Shown: positions 4,311 to 18,911, counted from the first letter of the stretch. The stretch: 32,000 nucleotides of DNA from Paramicrosporidium saccamoebae KSL3 (GCA_002794465.1 MTSL01000101.1:72987-104986), one strand, 5' to 3'. The notes: generated by a model from the letters alone, not told the origin. A program made the numbers and translations.

Positions 4311-4442
4311 ATACATTGAGTGACTCTGGCTGTTGTAAGATTTAAGCCATTGTCAACCAACTGTACATCGGCCAATCTCCCACTATATACATTGAGAGCC
4401 TCTGATTGCTATCGGAGAGTTTAAGCCATTCTCAATCAACCT
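4311..4442. repeat. Imperfect intergenic tandem duplication, period 76 nt
   Basis: ATACATTGAG...TTTAAGCCATTGTCAACCAAC at 4311 recurs as ATACATTGAG...TTTAAGCCATTCTCAATCAAC at 4387. Confidence 0.65.
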
Positions 4443-4477
4443 CAAATCCATCAGCTCACCACTGCACAAATGTTTAT

Positions 4478-4870
4478 TCAAGCCTGCGTCTTGGAGAATA
4501 CAACGAGAATTACTGAATCCCCTCTTAGGAACATTTTGCTAATAAAGCGATCCTTGTTCGACGGTGCGCTCTTCCTGCCCTTGCCCTTCCGTCCTGCTGT
4601 CTCTGTCCACACCTCGCGAACATTCTCAAGTACCATATTAAAATGTCTATCAAACGCCTTGACGCGCGCCAGCAACTTCCTATTGTTGCGACACGAAATG
4701 AGCACTTGGGTGTGCGTTTTAACGGCAGTCGTGAGGAGCGACATGGGGCCGGTTGAGAACTCGTGCTCCTCAAGCTCCTTCAATTCAGCTTGTGTCATTT
4801 CCGACTTTGGCTTGTTTGCCAAGCTACAAAGGATTAGATACAGACATGGATATGGGGGTTACTGCGACAT
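4478..4870 (-). CDS. SMD2: Small nuclear ribonucleoprotein Sm D2; join(complement 4863..4870,4478..4823)
   Basis: [10 protein letters not shown]...[33 protein letters not shown]...[18 protein letters not shown] 39-nt intron (4824-4862) supplies the start MSH. Confidence 0.97.
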
Positions 4871-5146
4871 GATGGGTCGATGAATAGTCGTCCCTGGCTA
4901 AAACCATAGTATTGTGCTGTTTCATAAGGGCGGGCGGTATACTGGATTTCCATGCGTTCTCATAAGAACGGGTAATTTTTGCTCTGTAGTCTTTTTGTCA
5001 ATGTGCCGAGTGTAAAGGTTACAGTAAAGGCTCCATATCTCCATATCCCCATATTCCCGTATCTCTATACCTCTGGTCCATAAATAAATGTGATGCTATG
5101 ATATGATTTACTCTCTTGCACTTATTAAGAGGAGTCTACGCAGCTT

Positions 5147-8100
5147 TCAACGTCTAATAGTCATGTTCTTGACAACAAGTCGGTTAGTGCGCACGCTACT
5201 TCCATCGCTCAGAGTGATTATATTGCTTTCCACTGATTTCAGCATTTCATGCACATTGGTGTCCTCGATGTATCGGTCCAGACTGAGCTCGTAAGCCTCC
5301 TCACGGGCAACTGTGACCTCTACCTTGTTACCACGGATGCCGATTTCAACTTCCACAAGTGGTTCAGACTTGCGGCTTTGAACATTTGTTCGATCCACCT
5401 CAATGGTCGGTCCAATGAGAGTTTCCACATCGGAATTGAGTGCAGTGTGCACCAATCCTGCACCTCCGCTAGCGAGCTTGTTCACAGCTTCACGGAAGTC
5501 AGAGTTGCCACGAAAGCCAACTGAACTCGGGTCAAATGTAGGCATCGACAGGACGAAATGACAGTCGCCAAGGAATGGGGAGAGACGCGTATGCACGCGA
5601 ACGAGGACTTTGAGCATATAGCTCAGCTGAGCCTGACTAGCGTTTGTAAGGACCGATGATAGAATGAGACGGTTGGCACGTTTTTGGATGGCCGCCAAAT
5701 AGGTACTTTCATACATCAAGGCAATGTATTTCCCAAACAGCGTCTTGTGTTGCAGCCAGTCTTCGGCTGAGAGACCATTCAAGTCAATTTGCTGGACAAT
5801 AGAGAAGCTTGAAGCAACGAGATCGGTGGTGGGCAGCTGATAAACGTCTGCAACAACGGGCGCATCAAATAAGGTCGCATCTTCCCAAACACGCACGTGA
5901 TAATTGTCTTTCAGCTGTTCAATCAACTTGGGTTGAGTGATCAGCTTGGTGGCAAGAAAGGCATTTCCCTTGTCATTTGAAAGTTTCTCAAACCCGAATC
6001 GAACATCAAACTTTGAGACAAGCAAGTAATCACGGTAGATGGATGCAATGGGAGCTGAAATGGTCTCATCTTGGGAAAACGAGTTGCGTTTGACCATTCT
6101 ACCCAGATCGGCAACAAAGGTTTGGGTCATCACCCGAACATTCAAAGGCGCTTCGCTCATTAGAGTTTCGCGAGGAGTAGCGCCTGTATGGATGCGAAGC
6201 TCCACACTGTCGATATGAATACGCTTGCTTCTCAGCACTCCACTCAACAAATCGACACGGGGACTATCAGTTCGAATACCTGCCAGTCTCCTCAGCGGTG
6301 TGTTGCTAAACATGGCCTCTGCCTCATCGTCAGGAACAGGGCGAAGGAAGTGGACAAAGCTTTCTGGGGGATATTCATTCAAATTTGGCGCACAATAGGG
6401 ATCATCACTCGGTTCTTCCAAAAATGGCAGCGCCTGGGTGAAATCCTCGGTAGTAGGGGTGGATTCAGAGCTTTTCAGGTTGGACTCTGAGATGGATACG
6501 GAACTGGCGGGGGGCAGGTCCTTTGAGTAAGTATAGGTTGTCTTTGTCTTGGCTAAACGGACTCGACGAGATTTCTTGGATGGCTCGTTACTGCAGATCA
6601 CTTCACTTTCCAGGCGTGCAATTCTTCCAGCCAATTTTATCAGGTAGGCACGTCTAGCTTCGAGGGATCCGGTTTGGAATGGATTTTTTCCTTTTGCGAT
6701 AGCGTCATGAGCTTCTTTCAACTTTTGGTACTTTTTAGATAACTTTTCCAAGGAGGCATCCTCATCGCTCTCGTTCGAATCGCTATCACTGTCCTCTGGA
6801 TCTTCACTGCTGTTCTCGGAATCTTCATTACTGTTCTCTGAACCTTCATTACTGTTTTGTGAATCTTCATTACTGTTTCGTGAATCTTCATTACTGTTTC
6901 GTGAATCTTCATTACTGTTTTCTGAATCTTCACCGCTGTTATCGGAATGTTTGTCATTACTGTCCAACTCTTCACCATTGTCGCTCGAACCTTCCTTATC
7001 CTTATCTGAGTCTTCGTCACCCTTGTTCAAATCTTCATAAATCTCGGTTATTTCTTCGTCAATATCGTTCAACTCTTTATCAACCTCGTTCAGTTCTTCA
7101 ACAACTTCGTTCAATTCTTCATCGATCCCGTTCAATTCTTTGTTATTATTGCCCAAATCTTTACCACTCTCGCCTGAACCTTCCTCAGTCTTGTTTGAAC
7201 TTTTATCGTCATTGTCCAAAGCTTCATCAATTTTGTTTAAACTTTCATCGTTATTGTCTAAAGCTTCATCGATCTTGTTTAAATCTTTGTTAGTCTCGTC
7301 CAGACCTTCGGCAGTAATTTCTGAACCTCCATTAGCCTCGTTCAAAGCTTCATCAGCCTTGTGCAACTCTTCGGCATTACTGTTCAAAGCTTCACCAATC
7401 TTGTTTAACTCTTCATCAGTTTTGTTTAAATCTTTGTCATTATCATCCAAAACCACGCCAGTCTTATTCAATTCTTCGTCATGTTTGTGCAATTCCTCAC
7501 CACTCCTACCCGAGCCTTCATCAGATGCAGCATAAGCGACCAAATCGGAACTAACTTCTGAATCCTCGTCTAGCAGTCTAGGCTCCACTTGAGAGTCAGC
7601 AGGCTGCAGCTGAGCAACTTGAACAATCGAAACTATTGATACCACTTCCAGTACGGGTTCAGTAGACAAGTCAACATTCTCACTGGTAGGCTCTGCGATC
7701 GGACCATTTGCATGACTGATAACATCATTCACTATGCACCAATTAACCACATATAATACTCCAACTTACAAGCAGCAAAGAGGTGTGCTTTGGTCCCCTC
7801 ATCGCGGGGTTTGAAATAGATAACCTCTCCCGATTCACCCGCAGCTAGTACCAACTCTACTCAAGTCATAATGACAATAGATAAGTGATACGGCCTATGT
7901 GGTCGGCATCTTCAGAGAGTTTTGCGTTATGAAGAGGAATACTTCTTCCCTCTGCTCCAAAAAGTTTTTCATGAGACTATACCATGACAAAAGCTGACAA
8001 AGAGTACCAAAACGATATTGGTATCATGGAAGCTCACACTCACGTCCTCAGCCACCTGCTTGAGCTCAATTGCAGTGGATATGGCCGTGTCCGTCTTGGA

Positions 8101-8148
8101 CGCCTCTGCAGTTGCAAATGCAACAGCCGCGAGTAGGAACAGCCGCAT
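5147..8148 (-). CDS. Secreted protein A (~965 aa): signal peptide, acidic repeat stalk, C-terminal family domain; exons 8148-8008, 7976-7892, 7856-7770, 7731-5147
   Basis: GT-AG introns of 31, 35 and 38 nt join the signal-peptide ORF (MRLFLLAAVAFATAEA) to the 867-aa ORF with consistent phases. An alternative in-frame first donor after ...VAED is possible. Confidence 0.75.
6798..6944 (-). repeat. Intragenic 21-nt tandem repeat, about 7 units (NEDSRNS-type heptads)
   Basis: GAATCTTCATTACTGTT or close variants recur at 6798, 6819, 6840, 6861, 6882, 6903 and 6924. Confidence 0.9.
7030..7520 (-). repeat. Intragenic degenerate heptad repeat (xDEELNK / xDEALDN type), acidic coiled-coil-like
   Basis: The translation shows recurring DEELNK, GEALNS, DEALNE, DEALDN and DEELNE units at 7-residue spacing. 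Confidence 0.75.
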
Positions 8149-8228
8149 TGGTCTTCTCAATGGCCTAGACTACAGCCTCAGCCACATCAACTTTTAATTT
8201 AATCGATCGCCTTCCTATTATGGTATAA

Positions 8229-9307
8229 TTACAAATCTCCAATCGCCTCCAGGACCTGGCAAACCGCCTGACAGGTTACATTTACATTATGGGATAATTG
8301 TTCTGGCTTTCCCGGATGACTGTCGCCATTTAGGAGATAGAGCAGCGAAAGCCAGCTATTCACCTGGAAGTATCCAACAACAACCCCATTCGAGAGCCGC
8401 AGCTCACCGGATGACTTTTGTGGCTCAAGGGACTCGCTAGTCTTCCGACGGTGTGGATGGTGATAGATGCTGCCGAGATCACAAATCATGTCGAGCGTCT
8501 CACTGGCAAGCTCGAAACTGCGCAATCCCAGGGGCGAAGAGTCGGCAGCGACAAACACTTTCCGGGTCGTGTCAAATAGAAAGGCCTTTTCAATCTTTGA
8601 ATTCTACAAACTTAATAACCACGACAGGGCTACATTGCAGAGCATGTCTAGTAGCGTCTCTAAGGCTGGTGTTTCGGGGAGGTGGGCTTGTATGATCCTG
8701 CTGAGGGAAATGTACAAAGTGTGATCAAAGATGCTTGTCAAATGGAAATTAATCACCGGAGGATCGGGACAGATTTCCATTGCTTCCTCTCTCACCTTTT
8801 GCGTGATATCCTTGAGCACATCTATTGATTACTGTTCACTCGGTGTTGCCAACCTTGTCGTTCTTGCTCGTCCAGGGAATCGGCCTTGTGAAGGAGCACT
8901 TCGATTGGAATGTTGAGATTTGCCAGCCGAGAACGCAGGGCCAACGCACACAATTTGGTGAGGGCATTCACATAGTCATCCGTAATGTCAACCACAAAGA
9001 GGGCCGCACAGCAGCCCGCAAATAAGCTCTCGTCAAAAGGCGCCGGCGAGTGTGGTTCCAAGATGACATTGGTATCGGGCAGGTCAACCACCTTTGTTGT
9101 AAGACTCCTCTCTTCTCTACCCCCATGAGACGGCGGACTATATTACGTCATAAAAGGCAGGCACGTTTGCTCGCCACGCGCATTTTCCTGGAACACAACC
9201 CGGTCGATTGTCGTCTTTCCGCTCCTAAAATCAATTCCGCATCGACGATACTTTGCCAGTCCGGTGAGGAGGAAGCACAGCTTTCCCCTGTCCACCTGTC
9301 CCGTCAT
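8229..9307 (-). CDS. GTR2: Rag GTPase RagC/D (Gtr2)-like, divergent, 5 exons
   Basis: Spliced N-terminus MTGQVDRGKLCFLLTGLAKSGKTTIDRVVFQ (intron 9225-9251, 27 nt), then IEVLLHKAD, FHLTSIFDHTLYISLSRIIQ, KAFLFDTTRKVFVAADSSP and LRLSNG. Confidence 0.85.
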
Positions 9308-9656
9308 ACAACAAACTCAAAATACACTTTTTATTCATTCGGCCATCTTTTCCTCCTTAATCAACAAAGGCGCTCCCTCGGTCCCGCAGATTCTCGTTGA
9401 ATAGGTCGCTACTGAGCATCTTTCCGCATTCCCGCCACGCTTGTGAGCAGAATAAAATCTAGGCCTTAATTAGCAAATGACTTTTACGGGGATGGATATG
9501 ACCATAGTGCCAGTAAATGTCGTGATTGCCCTCACCAGTTCTCTGCTTAGACTCATGAAATTTTGACTTGCATCCAACTTTATTTACATCCACTCATGGC
9601 TAGCCACGACCACTCACCATAATCACCCAAGACCATTTAACATCCCTCACAATTAA

Positions 9657-10298
9657 TCACTTGTGTTTCTTTGCAAATTGATCAGCCAGCGGATGTGCAG
9701 GCGGTATCTCGATCCCGACTCTCTCACTCCTAATCTTTAACGAATCGACACCCAATTTTGCATCTCTTTTGGCCAATAACGTTCCATCGACCATCTGGTC
9801 ATTGATAAGCGAGCACATTAATTTTGGCTCTCCGTATGGCAGCTTGTCTCCTCTGTCCACCTGCCAGAAATGCCACGTCTTTCCATATGTATCTGCGAGT
9901 TTTCGCATCTCAGCCTTTTCCATAATGTTAGGTACGCGAGGCATGATGAGTAGTCCTGAGGAGACTTCGTGGGCGTGGGAATGCCAGTACTTTTTCTCCT
10001 CATCCGGCATCGCTTCGAACATGGGACGGGAGATGATGTATTCGACTCCAATGAGACGCGCAGTCTTCTCGTCGGCCGTGTCGTAGATTAGACACTGTCG
10101 CAGATCCTCGGTCAGATGGGAACAGAAATGATCGGCTATGACTTGCCGATACGGCTGCTCTGCATACCCGTGAATGCCATTGAAATGTGTCATAATGTTG
10201 TTGATAGGCTTGAATTGTTGAACAATGGAGGATGCCATTCCACTAACATCGGTTGCCAGTGTGGTTTTCGTTGTCGGATATTCTCTATCGACTGTCAT
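9657..10298 (-). CDS. DUF1264 / oil body-associated protein-like
   Basis: HFCSHLTEDLRQCLIYD, RLIGVEYIIS, EEKKYWHSHAHEVSSG, TYGKTWHFWQVDRGDKLPYGEPKLM are characteristic of DUF1264. Confidence 0.9.
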   Translation of the reverse strand: MTVDREYPTTKTTLATDVSGMASSIVQQFKPINNIMTHFNGIHGYAEQPYRQVIADHFCSHLTEDLRQCLIYDTADEKTARLIGVEYIISRPMFEAMPDEEKKYWHSHAHEVSSGLLIMPRVPNIMEKAEMRKLADTYGKTWHFWQVDRGDKLPYGEPKLMCSLINDQMVDGTLLAKRDAKLGVDSLKIRSERVGIEIPPAHPLADQFAKKHK

Positions 10299-10411
10299 TT
10301 TGGTTGCCGTACTGGAGAGCTAGGGGCTTATAAGCTACTCATTTAGGTTGAAGGTTAACTTTACTAAAATGCAGTTACTTTGTAGATGGATAGATGGATA
10401 TTGGCGCTACC

Positions 10412-11983
10412 TTACTTGCCTGGTTCTTGGGTTTCACTGTCGCAGACTATGCTGAGGCTTTGGAATGTTCCCTTTGATTTCACAAGCTGTTTCTGGATTT
10501 TAAGCGTCTCTGCAATGGCTCCAAAGGCGTCATTCCATGCACGACTATTCGGCAATTTAGACACATGATATCCATTATGGAAGTAGATGGTTAATGACGG
10601 CTTGTGCGCTGTAGTCGCAGCAATTGCAGCCGAGAGGGCCTTTAAGTTGATGGCAGCTAGACGAGCAGTGCGCATGTCCAGGAGCGGATAGAGATGTACA
10701 GACTCTATCGAGTTCTTGCCGCAGGCGTGTAAAAGAACGGCTTCGTATTGCAGCTGTACGAGACGACCAATCTTTTCACTATATTGTTGGTAGATATCTT
10801 GACATTCCTTTGGAATTTCTACACATTAGCACCACTAATAGGAGCTACTAATTCGCATAGAAAATGCTAGATCCATGGTGCTGGTGTTAGTTGCATCCGC
10901 CTCTGTCAGGTATCGTGCATCCGCTGAATCAACCTTGTGCGATTTCCGGACCTTTTCCCATATGACAATGCCGCCACTCGTCTCCAAGTCGGCGATAATC
11001 GCATCCAGCTCATTCTGCTCCAAATGTTCGCGTGTCAATGTAAGCGCATTATCGGGATGGTCTGGCAAGTGCTTGTAGGACCACTGATACGCCAAAGCAG
11101 AGTCGAAGTGGCTTCGGTCATACGCACTCAAAGTATGCCGCGAATTGAACACTCTCAGCGCCATTCCTGCCGCTGGTATGAAAGCACTTGCCGTCAGATG
11201 TCGAAGATTGATTCGGGAATAGTCCGTCGGGGTAAAGGATGGCTGTTCGAGCACCTGGAAAAGCACCCGTTTGCTGGGATCGATTTTAGCCAGCAGTTCG
11301 GGGGAGGAGAGCTGCTCCGAAACGGCATCGGTGGGGAAACGGGCAATAAATTCGCCCCGACGGGTCGACTGTGATTTAGCATGTGAGATACGAGCTTGCT
11401 CATGCCGAGTGCGTAGCTTTTTAAGAGAATAATACGACTCGATACCAGCAGTTGAGAGGGGCGAGGCAACAATCTTGTCAGGGTCCACAATATGGCCGTA
11501 GAAATCGGCTTGTGAGGCGTGGCATTTAATAACCGTATCGATCACTAAATAATAGTCAAACTCGCCATTTGGGGTACATTCACGACGAAATCTGCCGAGG
11601 TCGTCAGCCGAAGCGTGCTCTACTACCACCAACTCGTGTCCGTCCTCCGGTGGCTTGGAAAATGAAAAGACTACAGTAAGCATTAATTGTAGTGCTTACA
11701 AAAATCCCCGTCCTCGTCCTCACTGATCGGGCCAATATTGCCACTACAGTTTCAATAAAAGCCACCCCTTACAAGTTATGCTTGACCTTTGGCTAAAATG
11801 TTACAACAACCAACTTTTAGGTACCAATGCCAACTTGTCCTTTATAATGGTGGGACGGCCGGTGGTCCTCGAGCTCAAATGGAAGGTGAATTCCGGGTAC
11901 TGGTCGATCATTTCGGAGACCGAGGAAGACGACACCGTGCCATAGAGGATTGCCACCGTCACAGTTGCAAGGGGAATGTGCAT
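10412..11983 (-). CDS. Secreted protein B (~483 aa), paralog of A and C; exons 11983-11825, 11792-11773, 11743-11700, 11670-10849, 10818-10412
   Basis: Four GT-AG introns (32, 29, 29, 30 nt) join the 60-aa, 282-aa and 87-aa ORFs in one open frame. N-terminal signal-like sequence MHIPLATVTVAILYGTVSS. Confidence 0.75.
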
Positions 11984-12080
11984 TGTGGCGCAACAGCATC
12001 GATCGGCCGTTTAAATAGTCAAATCATACCATTGGTCCAATTGATCAATTAAACAATTTGGAATGTGCTTGGTCAAAATG

Positions 12081-12170
12081 TACTAATTGTGAGATAATAT
12101 GCTATATTGTGAGAGAGTACGCTATATTGTGAAAGAGTACGCTATATTGTGAAAGAGTACGATACATTAT
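12081..12170. repeat. 20-bp tandem minisatellite, about 4 copies
   Basis: GAGATAATATGCTATATTGT / GAGAGAGTACGCTATATTGT / GAAAGAGTACGCTATATTGT / GAAAGAGTACGATACATTAT at 12091, 12111, 12131 and 12151. Confidence 0.9.
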
Positions 12171-12396
12171 GTGATAGTATATCCAGAGACCAGGTGTTAA
12201 AGCCAATGTATAAAACGGGTTAAAAGTAGTGACGGGCCTTGTGCTACAAACTTCATATACAGTGAACTGGACTCTAGTCTTTATTGCCAGTACAAGCCTC
12301 GTGCATAATGGATTGAATTCTAATAGCCTTTACCACCCCCAATACAAGCTTCACTATGACTCTCAGTTCATAACATCTTTTATTAAGGCCTTCGGT

Positions 12397-13802
12397 CTAG
12401 AGACTCTCAAGAGCCGTATTAGCTGTAACCATATGCAACTGGACTCGAGTGTGCTCGTTGCGTTTTTCTGCAAAGTTTTGAAACGCATTTTCCACATAGT
12501 ATGTCTCGGTATTCTCGTTGTACGGTAACACAACGTAAATATGGGGCAAACGGTGCATCTTGGAGACATTGTAAATTGCCTTTTGCAGAGCATTCATGCA
12601 AATGGAAAAGGTGGCCTCGCCTGGATCCGAAAGGGTGCGAAGATACAGATTGCCTTGTAATTTCACGTGGACGGCCGCAAAAAGAGCCTTAACGTATTGA
12701 CCGTAGAAAAATTCGTCAATTTCGTTTTCAATACTCGCTATCGATTCAGCGTCCACTTTATGCGTATATAGACCCATACCAAAAACCACGGCGACGGAAA
12801 CCGGATTGCCTGTTTGATGCACATATTTCTTCTCCTTTGTAAAGACAGTCTGTGCTCCACTGATTATCGGTGTCGGCTGCATATTAATGTTATTCATTGC
12901 ACGACGTAGCTCCAACGACGAAATGTCTTCTTGTGTCGCATACAGGGCCGAATGGTCTCCCAGCCAAGGGAGTTCATGATTGATGCAACTTGGGACAGCC
13001 TTCTCCTCGATGAGGAGTTGTTGGTAGACGTGCGCAAGGGAAGCAAAGATTTTCATGGAAGGATGTCCATTGGAGACGGTGAGGTACAACGACCTCTGGA
13101 ACAGGCCGGGATGCAGTACCTGGAACATGCACTGCGTCGTGGCTACCTTTATAAAGTTGTCTGGCAGGAGCAGTCTATCTGCATCCTAAAATAAGTAATA
13201 GCAGATGTAGTCATACTTTATCCATGGCCCAGAGTAGAGAGACGCTCGTCTCAAACGTATTCTCACCACCAACCGAGTACGCTTGGATCAGGTCATTTTT
13301 CGCCACATATTCAAACTGACCAAGCCGATTCGAAAACTGAGAATTTAGAAACGTCATTGTTGATATTTGGCTCAATGAATATTCTCTGCCTCGATCTACT
13401 GCTGCACAAGAGTCGGTTGCTTTCAGCGCCATAGAGGGAGGTGGGTCGTCTTTGTGGAGACGAACTACAGCTTAGGGATAACACTAAGAATCATACGGTA
13501 ATCCTGATATGCCTTCAAATCAGTCTCGTCGGCTGATTCAACCATCACACACGTCGTTGAAAGCTCTGCCATGAATTCTACACGAGTTGACTACCCGTGT
13601 AAACACCAAAATTACCAAATCTGTCACTCTTATTCTCAACAATTTCTGACATTCCCAAAACATCACGAGGTTGTATATCTAGCTCCCATTGAGCCGTCCC
13701 TGGGACCAAGGGCACAGTAGTACGATTTTCATTCGTGAGCAGCGTGACTCGGAGGACTCCTGATGCTGCTACCAACCCCACTAACCCAAAAATGAGCATC
13801 AT
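12397..13802 (-). CDS. Secreted protein C (~434 aa), paralog of A and B; exons 13802-13616, 13577-13497, 13464-13217, 13185-12397
   Basis: GT-AG introns of 38, 32 and 31 nt join the 74-aa, 73-aa and 243-aa ORFs in frame. Signal peptide MMLIFGLVGLVAASG. The 3' end could extend through one more intron. Confidence 0.75.
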
Positions 13803-13818
13803 TTCGACTCGCCGGGGT

Positions 13819-14463
13819 ATGGCTGAACAGTTGGAGCGCCAGCACGTCCGTAACGTTTATGACGACATTGCGGGACACTTTAGTGCAACGCGCTACAAAG
13901 CGTGGCCGGTTGTGGACAGGTTTGTCCGAGACCGAGAAAGGGGTTCGGTGGGAGTGGATGTTGGCTGTGGGAATGGAAAGAACATGCTGATTCGAGACGA
14001 CTTGCACATTACTGGATTTGACCTGTCCATTGAGCTACTCCGGATTTGTCAAGCGCAGGGCTTTGAGACGGTACAGGGAAACATGCTTTCTCTTCCCTTC
14101 CGCACTGAATCTCAAGAATTTGTCCTTTGCATTGCAGCACTCCATCATCTTGCGAGTGAGGAACGTCGGAGACAGGCTGTGCAGGAAATGGCCCGTATTT
14201 TGACTTTGGGTGCTGAAGTATTGATATATGTTTGGGCCTTGGAACAGCCGTCCTCCTCCTCCCTGTATCGCCACCAGCTGCAATATCTCTCCGAAGACCA
14301 ACAGGACGTCCTGGTACCCTGGAAGACGGGCGATGAGACGCAATTGCGCTATTATCATCTTTTCCGCCAGGGCGAATTGGAAATGCTACTGACCGAGGCC
14401 CATCTTCATCCCGTCTACAGCGGCTATGACCGTGACAATTGGTACGTTTGTGCACGCAAATAG
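13819..14463 (+). CDS. TRM9: tRNA wobble-uridine methyltransferase (Trm9/ALKBH8 MT domain)
   Basis: LERQHVRNVYDDIAGHFSATRYKAWP, DVGCGNGKN, CIAALHHL, LIYVWALEQ, RYYHLFRQGEL, YDRDNW. An upstream in-frame ATG exists at 13792. Confidence 0.92.
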   Translation: MAEQLERQHVRNVYDDIAGHFSATRYKAWPVVDRFVRDRERGSVGVDVGCGNGKNMLIRDDLHITGFDLSIELLRICQAQGFETVQGNMLSLPFRTESQEFVLCIAALHHLASEERRRQAVQEMARILTLGAEVLIYVWALEQPSSSSLYRHQLQYLSEDQQDVLVPWKTGDETQLRYYHLFRQGELEMLLTEAHLHPVYSGYDRDNWYVCARK

Positions 14464-14464
14464 T

Positions 14465-15271
14465 TTATTTTTGCGAATCCACAAATGCAGCCCGCACCTT
14501 TCGGAGGAACGCAAAAAAGTCGCCTCCCGCATTTAGCTCATCCAGCAGCGTTGACAGTTGTGGAATCATGGGCTCACAGGACTGCACCCGGAAACGGTTG
14601 GTGGAAATGTCAATGAGAATGCTGAAACGTCGTTCCCAGTCGGCAGGATCAATGTATTTGAAGGAGAAGCGAGTTAGTCCCTCTACATATTAGTTGATGC
14701 GACAGGTGCACCAGCGACAGTATCGACATAAAGACCCATCTTTTCTTGACTCAGAATAGCAGCGAGTTGTTCCTTTAACAGACTGTTCTGTGCTTCCTGC
14801 TCTCTCTGCTCCAACACTGCGCCATAAGGAAATGTAACTATGTGTACCAGTGACTTCCCGACTAAGCTTCTCCTTCAATAAATTCACCTGGTCACGCGTC
14901 TCATTGAGTTTGCGTGCTAGCAGATTGCGCTGCGAGTCCAAGTCTTGATTGTATTTTACACCCTCCTCAAACTCTTTCTGTTCCGCCTGCAATTCTAGCG
15001 AATAAACACAATGCGCATGAATTACCCGCCACGACGCTTTGTCGTTTGTGGACCAATCCGGCAAGCTGTTTCTTCATTCCCTCCACCGCATCTACCATCA
15101 TAGTGCAACTACATTGTTACCATGTTCCTGCTCCAGCGTCCGGAGATATTCCTCCTTGTCACTGGTTAGTACGGCCCGTCTTCCCGCTAGCCAACTGCCA
15201 AACAGCGCACCAAACTCGCTTAGCTCCGTTTTCATCTCTTCAAAATGCTGCTGCAGGGCGAGAGTGTGCAT
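14465..15271 (-). CDS. SPC25: Kinetochore Ndc80-complex subunit Spc25, 5 exons
   Basis: Coiled-coil N-terminus (MHTLALQQHFEEMKTEL...) spliced through four short introns to MGLYVDTVAEGLTRFSFKYIDPADWERRFS...CEPMIPQLSTLLDELNAGGDFFAFLRKVRAAF. Confidence 0.85.
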
Positions 15272-15362
15272 GGCCGATTCAGACCGCGAGTCGGATGGTC
15301 CTGCCCATTCGGTGGAGTGTGATTTCCGTAGCATTCCCGCCCTGGAGGATCCAATCAGCGCT

Positions 15363-15812
15363 ATGAGAACCGAAGAGTTTGAGGAAGCCGTCATGCAGTT
15401 GGTGGCATGGACCCGCGAATACAATTTGGATGCCAAAAAAACTGTCAGCATTAGTGCTGTAGACATTCACAAGTGCTATGCAACCACCTCATCAGTGTAT
15501 CTCCAATTGGACAATGATGTCCAAGTGTTTTACTCACCCTCCTTCCAAGTTCCAGTCCTTTACTTTCCATATAATACCAAATCAACTGAGTTTGGAGAGG
15601 GGAAAATCAGCTACACGGAACACCCCATCACAGGACTTCCGTGTCTGTTCCTACATCCCTGCCAAACAGCCGCCGTAATGAAGGAAATGCCATTTGTTGA
15701 AAACTATCTCTGGGCCTGGCTTGCTGTATATGTCAAAGACGTCCCAGCCCTAACAATTCCAATGGAATTCTTTTCAAAATCGCCCAGGTCCATCAGTGGG
15801 GGGACGGGTTAA
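15363..15812 (+). CDS. ATG10: Autophagy E2-like conjugating enzyme Atg10
   Basis: MRTEEFEEAV start, YSPSFQVPVLYF, ISYTEHPITGLPCLFLHPCQTA (catalytic HPC), YLWAWL. An alternative in-frame ATG lies at 15270. Confidence 0.88.
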   Translation: MRTEEFEEAVMQLVAWTREYNLDAKKTVSISAVDIHKCYATTSSVYLQLDNDVQVFYSPSFQVPVLYFPYNTKSTEFGEGKISYTEHPITGLPCLFLHPCQTAAVMKEMPFVENYLWAWLAVYVKDVPALTIPMEFFSKSPRSISGGTG

Positions 15813-15962
15813 CTGTTCTTAACCAAGAATCAAAAGAATTCCATTGGAAGAAAGCTCTTACTCAATCTTGGTCTCTCTGGCAAGTCTGATGGAAGAAGTA
15901 CGTGACTCGATCCTAGTCCACAGTCTAAAGGGTACTAACTGTTATGAAACATTCGCTTATGA

Positions 15963-16180
15963 TTGGCAATCCTGATGTCACGTAGTGAGGATGATACCAC
16001 GGACTTTGTCAGACGAAAAGGGGAATTAGTTCACTGCTAATCCTAGAACAGTATGGATACACATCGCAGTCCTCAAGTGCTCGGCTAATCGATACACCTT
16101 ATCGTGCAAATACATCTTCTCCAAACTAGGGAACCATCCTCAAATACCCGACTAATCAATTCTCTGCCTCTACGTCACAC
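15963..16180. repeat. Dispersed intergenic repeat, copy 1
   Basis: Collinear similarity to 24190-24410 (same strand) and 20511-20632 (opposite strand). Confidence 0.7.
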
Positions 16181-16329
16181 TGATAAATATCCTAGAATTC
16201 ATCCCAGTCATATTGAGAATGGCACCTTTAATGGGATTATTTGATGAGATAGATTACTCTCGCTATTGCAATTCAGCAAACCCCTCAACCATCATGGGAA
16301 ATTTATGAAATCTACTCACTACCACTGCA

Positions 16330-17754
16330 TTATTGGGATTGTGTTTGGAACCCCTGAACAACCGCCTTGTCCTTCAAAAGATTAACGACAGTTAGGACTC
16401 CATTGCTGCCGGCCAAACTGACCAAATTGGGAGCATCGAAGCAGAATGCGCCACAGAATACCTTTCCCACGCCAACATCTCGGGAGGCCACACAGGCCAC
16501 CTGTCCTCGCGTATTCCACAACTTTACAGTTTTGTCAGCCGACACGGTCAACAGACAATCCGGCAAGGACGGGTTCCAATCAATTGCAGTGACGGGCTTT
16601 GGATGGGCCGCCAGGATGAACAAGGGATCACTATTCGAACCGGCCCGGGTGTCATAATATGTGACCCGACCACTCTCGTCACTGACAGCAAAACAGTGCG
16701 GCTGGTGAGGGTTCCATCGGAGACATTCGGGATCAGCGTGCAGGTTCCATGTAAGAGCATCGCTTGGCATTCGGCAGTCCAGTGACACAACTTTGTGATC
16801 ATAGCCAGCCGATGCAAAAATCGAGGCTTCTGTTGGGTTCCATTGTAGTGCTTGCACCTATGAAATAAAAAATCAACTCGACAGTAATACCTTTCCGGAA
16901 TGGTGCTCCAACGACCGCAGAGCCTTTGCCTGGCTGAGATCCCACAACTTGACTGTCGTGTCAGCCGAGCCTGAAAGCAAAAAGCTCGTATGCAGACGGT
17001 TCCAAGATAAGGTCATTACTGCATCCGTGTGCATCTCGGCATTGGTGGTGGTGGCCTTCTTGGACTTTTTGCCTTTTTTGGACTTGCCTTTTTCGGTCTG
17101 GCCCAGGACGAGGGTGGGGTAGGGGACTTCCAGGACGTCCAGGTTCCAGACTTCAATTTCGGGCTCAAAGGTACCGACAGCTGCAAAATTGCCACCCGCA
17201 CTGCCGTCGAGGGAGGTGCCAATCCATTCTGTGCACAGTGGGAATGACGGCAACATGATGTCGTGGTGGACGTACAAGTTGTCGTCCTCCTCCTCATAGA
17301 CATAGACTTCCAGACAGGAAATGTCATCTTCGGTGCGACAGGCTAGCAGGATATTGTCGGTGGGTCGGATATTCAAGTCATCCAAATCCTCCTCATCCAC
17401 CTCAGATTCCTCCTCCGGCTTGAGATATTCGTCCTCGCCCAGAGCAGCATCATCCACGTTAGACATGGCCTGCAGCAAATCTTCCTCATCCAAATCCTCT
17501 TCGTCACTATACCCCTCCAAGTTGAATCTGGCCAGATCCTCTTCCATAGTGTCCACCTTTCTAAGAAATTAGCCATGACGAAAAAGGTACGTTTCAGCGA
17601 CTTCAGTCTTTGCGAGCTTGAGCGACTCTTTGGCGTCCTCGATTTCAAATTTCGCGCGGCTCATAATGTCGGCATACTGCTCTTCGGTCATTTCGAAGCG
17701 TTCAGGCGTGGACGCCGCTGCACCTTTGCGGATCCAGGCTGTGGCCGAAATCAT
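16330..17754 (-). CDS. PWP1: Periodic tryptophan protein 1 (WD40), 3 exons
   Basis: MISATAWIRKG start, LEVYVYEEEDDNLYVHHDIMLPSFPLCTEW, AVGTFEPEIEVWNLD, HTDAVMTLSWN, LSGSADTTVKLWDL. Confidence 0.95.
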
Positions 17755-17797
17755 CCCAGACTTCTATGAACCCTGGTCGCCGGTTGACAAAGTCTGT

Positions 17798-18911
17798 TTA
17801 TACACCACTGTCGGCTACAAAGGTCCAGTGATCACGTACCTCGTGTGGTGGGGCCCATCTAGACGTTACTACGGTTTGTGGCGATACAAGTATAATAGTC
17901 TACTGGATTTGTAGGCATCGGGAAGCAGTTCTTCAATGAACTGCAATGAGAGCTTGGGCCGTCTTTGATTCGACGAGGCTGGCTTGACAAAATCAAATAT
18001 ACAATCTGGATTTCTCTGATGTCTAATGGTTTGGGAATCACCAACCTGTCGGAGTGAGCATAAAGAATGGGTCTACCTTGCGGAATATCATCAGAGTGGA
18101 ATGAGAGCATCCAAAAACGGGTCCACTCCGAGTATGGATCCGATTATTGATAGTCTTGCCAATCCAGACTGCATTTTCGACATAGTTGAAGCCCCAGGCC
18201 GTCACTACATCGACCAGATCAGCAAGATATTCAGTTTCTATCCAGATGAAGAGGAATCCCCCAGTCATGACACCAGGGAGTGATAAGGTGGCAAAAGATC
18301 CTTTGGGAGTGTTCTCCTCAGAAAACGGGGGATCCATGACCACTCCAAGCCAATCAGTAGACTCCAGGATGCGCAGATCAGGACTATTACAGAGGTTGGT
18401 GGGGAGATTCAAAGTTAATTTTTCACCAAAGCTTTGAGGATTGGAATCAATGATGAGAGCCCATGATCTGCTGAGTGGATCGGGTAAATTCAACACCATT
18501 GTGCCGCTCGGCGACCTTGGAGATTTTAGAGATTTGTCTTTGACAAGAGGCAATGACCCAACACCTCTCCGCTTAGTAGTCGGCATCCTATCGGGCTCAT
18601 CATCCGAGAGCTCTGCCTCTTCTGCGCTCTCAACCAACTCGTCTTCTGCAACATCCAACTCATATCCGTCACCCCATTGTACAGACTTTACGGTAAACGA
18701 ACTCGTCTGCACAAACACTTGATGTAATTGGGTGTCATTGAGCGGCTTGCCCGCGTCTTGTATTCGGTCGAGTTCTTCAAACTTTTTCATGATGGCACTG
18801 ATTGATTCTTCATCTTCCACATAGCCAACATAGTGTGTGGGACTATAGCATATTACAAGGAGGAGATTAAAGTTACTCAATAGTAGGTGGACGAGCACAT
18901 GCTCTCCTCAT
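17798..18911 (-). CDS. MT-A70 family adenine methyltransferase-like protein (AMT6/7, MTA9-like), 4 exons
   Basis: Spliced product: MRRACARPPTIDPTHYVGYVEDEESISAIMKKF...VVMDPPF...GFLFIWIE...WGFNYVENAVW...LMIFRKVGDSQTIRHQRNPDCIFDF...EELLP...LLYLWAPPHEVRDHWTFV. Three GT-AG introns of 34, 31 and 29 nt. Confidence 0.8.

Follow-up and report, generated by a model that had tools for sequence, protein, structure and literature searches.

Three minus-strand genes, termed A (8148-5147), B (11983-10412) and C (13802-12397), lie within a 32,000-nucleotide (nt) stretch of the Paramicrosporidium saccamoebae genome, hereafter the window, which belongs to contig MTSL01000101.1 of assembly GCA_002794465.1 (window position = record position - 72986). 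P. saccamoebae, within Rozellomycota, is an intranuclear parasite of amoebae (PMC5701793), its host being Saccamoeba, and its genome in the window is gene-dense with very short introns. The products of A, B and C share a common domain at the level of sequence profiles, and structure prediction for A gives this domain a macrodomain fold of the microbial-type poly(ADP-ribose) glycohydrolase (PARG) kind.

The spliced models of all three genes translate in frame without stops, and all 10 introns are of the GT...AG type, 29-67 nt long, with TAG- or CAG-type acceptor ends. Gene A, encoding 953 amino acids (aa), has four predicted exons (8148-8044, 7976-7892, 7856-7770 and 7731-5147) separated by introns at 8043-7977 (67 nt), 7891-7857 (35 nt) and 7769-7732 (38 nt); a first intron of 44 or 50 nt instead would disrupt its reading frame. 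Predicted exons 11983-11825, 11792-11773, 11743-11700, 11670-10849 and 10818-10412 make up gene B (483 aa), and 13802-13616, 13577-13497, 13464-13217 and 13185-12397 make up gene C (434 aa). Brute-force enumeration of GT-AG intron combinations proved far too permissive as a means of choosing models; since GT-AG pairs alone cannot pick a model, conservation in orthologs was used for the choice. Exons 2 and 3 of A, containing LFGAEGRSIPLHNAKL and GEVIYF, are conserved in two related loci, L004 and L010. The last intron of B occupies the same codon position in the L004 ortholog (FTAEL followed by KFDVDCKDIIKNY, versus FSMRI followed by KIPKECQDIYQQY), and removal of the 29-nt B intron at 11699-11671 restores a conserved G.IG.I...F.F.FS pattern that is continuous in L004. 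In C, a 31-nt intron retains LLLPDNFIK, which is conserved in the ortholog of a third related locus, L007 (ALLKLDTFIYK), and which the GenBank model splices out. A previous examination of this DNA, the sequence-only reading, had proposed three separate spliced minus-strand genes; the in-frame models and ortholog conservation bear this out, and every motif string it had quoted was found in place. Its intron range of 29-38 nt fails for the first intron of A, at 67 nt.

Public annotation presents these genes differently. One GenBank model, 11983-5147 on the minus strand and 1799 aa long, joins B, a DUF1264 gene, a Gtr1/RagA gene and A, such that A and B form its two ends, and it carries DUF1264 and Gtr1/RagA matches. 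The DUF1264 protein gene (9657-10298, minus strand; complete Pfam DUF1264 domain at 9660-10298) and the Gtr1/RagA GTPase gene (about 8229-9400, minus strand; Pfam Gtr1/RagA fragment at 8825-9091) are housekeeping genes outside the A/B/C family that occupy the minus strand between A and B (8229-10298). Because DUF1264 and RagA are separate open reading frames (ORFs) in related syntenic contigs, the 1799-aa model is a chimera of four genes. Gene C is represented in GenBank by PSACC_01372 (352 aa, 12397-13572), which lacks the signal-peptide first exon and uses two longer introns that excise conserved residues. The present models thus correct a serious mis-annotation, comprising a four-gene 1799-aa chimera plus a truncated fifth gene. 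A plasmid megablast with the MYST gene returned no match.

At its 5' end, C meets a divergent methyltransferase gene. The first exon of C (13802-13616, minus strand) runs into the upstream portion of the methyltransferase open frame (GTG at 13735), and with the annotated methyltransferase start (ATG at 13792, plus strand) the C gene overlaps the methyltransferase 5' end by ~11 nt; either this overlap is real or one of the two start codons has been called wrongly. Between C and B, a 20-nt unit with a ACTCTTTCACAATATAGC core is repeated in 4.7 tandem copies at 12086-12179, ~100-200 nt upstream of the B ATG; no further copy exists in the window, where 0 would be expected by chance, and the array may act as a promoter or regulatory element for B. 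An 8-nt tandem repeat (CTCCATAT x 5.4) at 5031-5073, between A and SmD2, lies directly downstream of the A stop codon.

Each protein begins with a short hydrophobic segment (MRLFLLAAVAFATAEA in A, MHIPLATVTVAILYGTVSSSS in B and MMLIFGLVGLVAASGVLRVTLL in C), with N-terminal 10-aa Kyte-Doolittle maxima of 2.2-2.8, and a hydropathy scan detected no further hydrophobic 19-aa window in any of the three. Wherever the contig of an A homolog extends far enough upstream, an ATG-initiated signal-peptide-like exon is present (L004 9705, L007 9504 and L010 1782); both B orthologs also possess a signal-peptide-like first exon, and the C ortholog has a candidate first exon upstream of it (L007 3670). On these heuristic grounds, A, B and C are predicted to enter the secretory pathway via an N-terminal signal peptide or anchor; the signal-peptide start earlier assigned to each gene is matched by signal-peptide-like starts in hydropathy and by equivalents in orthologs. 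The 22-residue hydrophobic stretch of C could be a signal anchor instead of a cleavable signal peptide.

In protein A, a small N-terminal module and a tail of ~80 aa are conserved; the protein further contains acidic heptad repeats, a coiled coil with a conserved NPFQxGSL motif and a predicted PARG-fold domain of ~320 aa. The acidic spacer measures ~300 aa and is encoded by 21-nt (7-aa) tandem repeats at 6788-7434 on the minus strand (~28 copies; Tandem Repeats Finder), with the heptads NSNEDSx and xELNKxD in two arrays of ~8 and ~20 copies; D, E, N, S and K together account for 68% of residues 150-440. The spacer is variable, since the corresponding region in orthologs differs in sequence and length. 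The predicted PARG-like macrodomain-fold core (approximately 5390-6355, minus strand) covers about residues 1-320 of the C-terminal 403-aa query, which starts FVHFLRPV with residue 1 at 6355-6353, and contains four motifs: VRVMTQTF (motif 1), SAPIASIYRDY (motif 2), VRVWED (motif 3) and YIALMYESTYLAAIQKRANRLILSSVLTNAS (motif 4).

BLASTP comparison among A, B and C gave nothing significant, and their relationship emerges in profile comparisons. A hidden Markov model (HMM) of seven A-family sequences matches B precisely at motifs 3 and 4, with 8.5 bits (single-target E 4e-5), and matches C over motif 4 (E 0.04). Profile-profile alignment with hhalign yields a score of 38.7 for the B family against the A family (P 2.9e-4, 222 columns), 38.4 for the B family against the C family (P 1.2e-4, 206 columns) and 30.6 for the C family against the A family (P 2.5e-3, 107 columns). 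The three alignments are collinear and mutually consistent, and they reproduce the motif pairings noted earlier. Column-shuffled controls (100 per pair) scored 14-15.5 +/- 2.2 with a maximum of 22, reversed profiles (six comparisons) scored 12.6-19.3, and 15 unrelated window proteins (45 comparisons) scored 9-21 over short alignments. Among 941 six-frame ORFs from the window and four loci, the B HMM, its own family aside, matches the C ortholog best (E 0.003), and the C HMM likewise matches best the last exons of the B orthologs (E 0.005-0.12); B and C additionally have in common an N-terminal segment, VVVEH/VMVES. The A/B/C similarity is beyond chance because the hhalign scores exceed the controls and the B and C HMMs match each other. 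These comparisons indicate that A, B and C share a common domain, with B and C mutually closest and A-C the weakest link, and so uphold the earlier suggestion of distant paralogy through a C-terminal domain.

The C-terminal 403 residues of A were modeled with AlphaFold2 from a seven-sequence alignment. The model has a mean predicted local distance difference test (pLDDT) value of 65.7 and a predicted template modeling (pTM) score of 0.72, with most of residues 20-80 and 130-320 at pLDDT 70-94, and is poorly defined at residues 83-131 and in the last 80 residues. A Foldseek search of the PDB places bacterial PARG entries in the first 13 positions (E 1e-6 to 4e-4), including those from Thermomonospora curvata (3SIH, E 1e-6) and Deinococcus radiodurans (5ZD*), followed by PARP14, macroH2A, SauMacro and other macrodomains; leucine aminopeptidase and KaiC are interspersed among these secondary matches at similar E-values. 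In BFVD, the best matches are mostly giant-virus microbial-type PARG, DUF2263, TIGR02452 or unnamed giant-virus proteins (E 1e-8 to 1e-4). Because PARG proteins are the top matches in both databases, the idea of a PARG/macrodomain fold is supported for A, whose domain is predicted to fold as a macrodomain of the microbial PARG type. A model of C that included A-family rows reached pLDDT 44, and its Foldseek macrodomain matches (E 0.06-0.2, ~90 residues at ~3 Å) are neither significant nor independent. The macrodomain/PARG-like fold that the sequence-only reading had suggested for all three proteins is thus retained for A; for B and C a PARG-like fold would follow from profile homology to A.

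The fold prediction has no counterpart in sequence searches. A Pfam hmmscan to E 10 with all A/B/C pieces and the A-family members detected no PARG, Macro or other relevant family, and a PDB sequence search with the A profile gave no match. Against a profile of 33 non-redundant bacterial PARGs, derived from 80 bacterial loci retrieved, hhalign was not significant for A (P 0.09), B (P 0.27), C (P 0.18) or a merged 12-sequence A/B/C superfamily (P 0.067). This result rules out the family as a detectable sequence member of PF10021; the family fails sequence-defined PF10021 membership, though the predicted fold of A matches. The weak superfamily-PARG alignment, spanning 136 columns over the C-terminal half, is collinear and structurally sensible, mapping YIALMYESTYLAAIQKRANRLILS----SVLTNAS onto ...LVLGAWGCGVFRNDP and HFVLSMP onto VVFAV.

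The hallmark segments of PARG, confirmed in PDB sequence 5ZDB (AALNFASAKNPGGGFLGGAQAQEEDLCRGSGLY and HLVLGAWGCGVFRNDP), are absent from the family. The signature GGG-X6-8-QEE, which holds the catalytic Glu-Glu, is found by regular expression in 32 of the 33 bacterial PARGs and 0 of 12 A/B/C-family sequences, and the Gly-rich diphosphate loop LGAWGCGVF in 27 of 33 and 0 of 12, respectively. Neither GGG nor QEE occurs in any of the 12 sequences, nor do the MacroD-type (PF01661) motifs Nx6GG[VLI]D and G[VIA][YF]G as defined in PMC6500376, in agreement with the earlier remark that A, B and C lack the canonical motifs. At the place of the diphosphate loop, located by the weak alignment only, the family has RLILS----SVLTNAS or VVLGS----AFVNG, which suggests that the Gly-rich loop (GAWGCGVF) is shortened by ~4 residues and devoid of glycines. 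The A family possesses its own invariant polar residues (Q79, N128, D192, E217, R254 and H256), which are not common to B and C.

Homologs of A were recovered from environmental sequence data. The closest, the ortholog P0001 from a JGI metagenome, found by a word-indexed search, is 72% identical to the C-terminal 403 aa of A, with a nonsynonymous-to-synonymous ratio (dN/dS) of 0.22 (Nei-Gojobori, 450 codons). Four further homologs (P0003-P0006, E 3e-36 to 5e-20), none carrying a protein name, come from metagenomes or Logan assemblies and were retrieved when 1.84 billion representative proteins were searched exhaustively with a profile. That search with A returned five proteins only, none with the GGGxFG motif of the family (FQVASxFN...TQGP...IYRNY...AYEATL...LTLxGGGxFG) to which the sequence-only reading had likened A, B and C. 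The word-indexed search found nothing for B and only its own annotation for C, and metagenome scans seeded by B-family and A-family alignments yielded no confirmed loci.

Relatives' contigs conserve the gene order methyltransferase - [C] - B - DUF1264 - RagA - A homolog - SmD2 - cytidylyltransferase (CCT) - mitochondrial carrier, with the remote A homologs (P0003-P0007) always flanked by RagA and SmD2. Orthologs of B occupy the expected syntenic place in L004/L008 (tblastn summed E 3e-65) and L007 (2e-33), and an ortholog of C is present in L007 at 4432-5379 (tblastn 6e-12); tblastn detected no C ortholog in L004. Identity to relatives is 33% for A, 33-37% for B and 25% for C, compared with 59-86% for the neighbours (SmD2 85%, CCT 78%, DUF1264 63-78% and methyltransferase 59-68%). 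A, B and C are real genes, conserved yet fast-evolving. Across several Paramicrosporidium-like lineages they are syntenic single-copy genes subject to purifying selection, and they diverge 2-3x faster than their neighbours, as is usual for parasite-surface or host-interface proteins. The expanded family once proposed is not borne out: three copies are seen, each a conserved single-copy ortholog in relatives.

The two relatives differ in local organization. L007 retains the gene order of the window, C included. In the L004/L008 relative, the block of methyltransferase, Atg-like (Autophagy_act_C) and WD40 genes is inverted and contains an extra Spc25 gene (L004 1-5300 versus window 13735-18800), which points to rearrangement and possible loss of C in that lineage.

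Comparison with known systems sets the family apart from each of them. The best structural match of the A model in both PDB and BFVD is microbial-type PARG (PF10021 PARG_cat_microb/DUF2263/TIGR02452; 3SIH, 5ZDA), with E 1e-6 to 1e-8, probability 1.0, a template modeling (TM) score of ~0.55 on the target and the same beta-alpha order; unlike these bacterial PARGs, which are cytosolic single-domain enzymes, A, B and C combine a predicted signal peptide with additional modules at both the N- and C-terminal ends. Non-catalytic reader macrodomains (macroH2A, PARP9/PARP14), secondary Foldseek matches of A, likewise combine a macrodomain fold with the loss of hydrolase residues, but they retain the Gly-rich ADP-ribose-holding loops that A, B and C lack, and they are nuclear or cytosolic modules of host-type proteins, whereas A, B and C are predicted to be secretory. 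The DUF2362/C12orf4 Macro-like family is a very diverged eukaryotic family recognizable only by profile or structure methods and of uncertain catalytic status (PMC6500376), and in these respects offers a precedent for A/B/C; it differs in its MacroD-like motifs, broad eukaryotic distribution and lack of a secretion signal, and Pfam scans revealed no similarity between the two. Literature searches on the A/B/C family, on secreted macrodomains in microsporidia and on the Paramicrosporidium secretome found nothing relevant.

On balance we favor, as the probable explanation, that A, B and C are anciently duplicated, lineage-specific secretory proteins built on a non-catalytic PARG-derived fold and serving as pseudoenzymes or scaffolds. 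Each would carry a domain of ~300 aa, which in A would hang from the ~300-aa acidic heptad-repeat spacer and the coiled coil. Because the PARG catalytic loop is lost and the Gly-rich loop seems shortened, the domain most likely performs no hydrolysis of poly- or mono-ADP-ribose (PAR or MAR) by the known mechanism; it is probably a non-catalytic binding or scaffold module, and canonical ADP-ribose chemistry is hard to reconcile with the missing loops.

Several points weigh against this explanation. The link between the family and PARG is absent at the sequence-profile level, in Pfam, PDB profile and hhalign searches alike. The A model is of moderate confidence, and residues 83-131, where the catalytic loop would fall, have pLDDT <50; for B and C the fold is reached through A, and the C matches are weak and biased by the A-family alignment rows. 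The A-B, A-C and B-C pairs reach only modest hhalign probabilities (12-55%), and the underlying profiles are shallow (2-7 sequences). The splice junctions are predictions from sequence comparison, and secretion is deduced from hydrophobicity heuristics only. Finally, the invariant polar residues of the A family make a different activity or ligand possible, and A, B and C may be enzymes with a new active site.

That the trio has a structural role, in the spore wall or in the invasion apparatus of the polar filament, with the PARG-derived fold serving just as a scaffold, is unlikely. The signal-peptide-like starts, rapid divergence, gene clustering and acidic repeats of A resemble microsporidian polar tube and spore wall proteins, and the combination of acidic heptad repeats with a coiled coil in A, together with the lost ligand-binding loops, would suit such a role. 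The microsporidian ptp1 and ptp2 are likewise adjacent genes. However, Pfam reveals no similarity to a known polar tube or spore wall family, and the conserved part of the family is a globular domain instead of the repeats. A structural role is, moreover, compatible with a secreted, non-catalytic PARG-derived scaffold and does not exclude it.

Rather less credible is the proposal that A, B and C are secreted effectors which bind or process ADP-ribose-type ligands in the host nucleus via a remodeled pocket, the candidate ligands being PAR, MAR, O-acetyl-ADP-ribose or ADP-ribosylated nucleic acid. The predicted PARG-like fold, the secretory signal and the growth of the parasite inside the host nucleus (PMC5701793) are consistent with such a function, and the invariant polar residues of the A family, identified from the alignment, would be compatible with a remodeled ligand pocket. 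Against this stand the absence of both GGG-X6-8-QEE and the Gly-rich diphosphate loop in 12 of 12 sequences and the restriction of the conserved polar residues to A; the host-nucleus location may hold but is conjectural. A more specific version, in which the trio is secreted into the host nucleus and binds, masks or sequesters poly/mono-ADP-ribose or a related nucleotide-sugar mark via a remodeled pocket, thereby disturbing host chromatin or DNA-damage signaling, is improbable. Most improbable is that B, C or both lack homology to A, the motifs arising from chance plus a similar secondary-structure pattern with only A being PARG-like: the negative BLASTP result, the 12-55% hhalign probabilities, the A-C P of just 2.5e-3 and the failed structure model of C (pLDDT 44) would allow it, but all three profile scores (31-39) lie above every shuffled, reversed and unrelated control, the alignments are long, collinear and in agreement, the B and C HMMs match reciprocally, and the genes are adjacent on the same strand.

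The preferred account, of secretory proteins on a non-catalytic PARG-derived fold, thus describes a previously unrecognized protein family restricted to Paramicrosporidium-like rozellids, matched by no Pfam model or named protein. A microbial-type PARG fold that entered the secretory pathway and lost both its catalytic and its ligand-binding loops, as modeled for A and extended by homology to B and C, would be an unusual fate for this fold. A role for A, B and C in host ADP-ribose signaling is speculation; because the parasite lives in the host nucleus, the site of ADP-ribosylation signaling, the family is a concrete candidate for host manipulation, and a trio acting in the host nucleus would, if true, open a new class of effectors of eukaryotic parasites, based on the microbial PARG fold. 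Alternatively, A, B and C may represent a new component of the early-microsporidian invasion apparatus.

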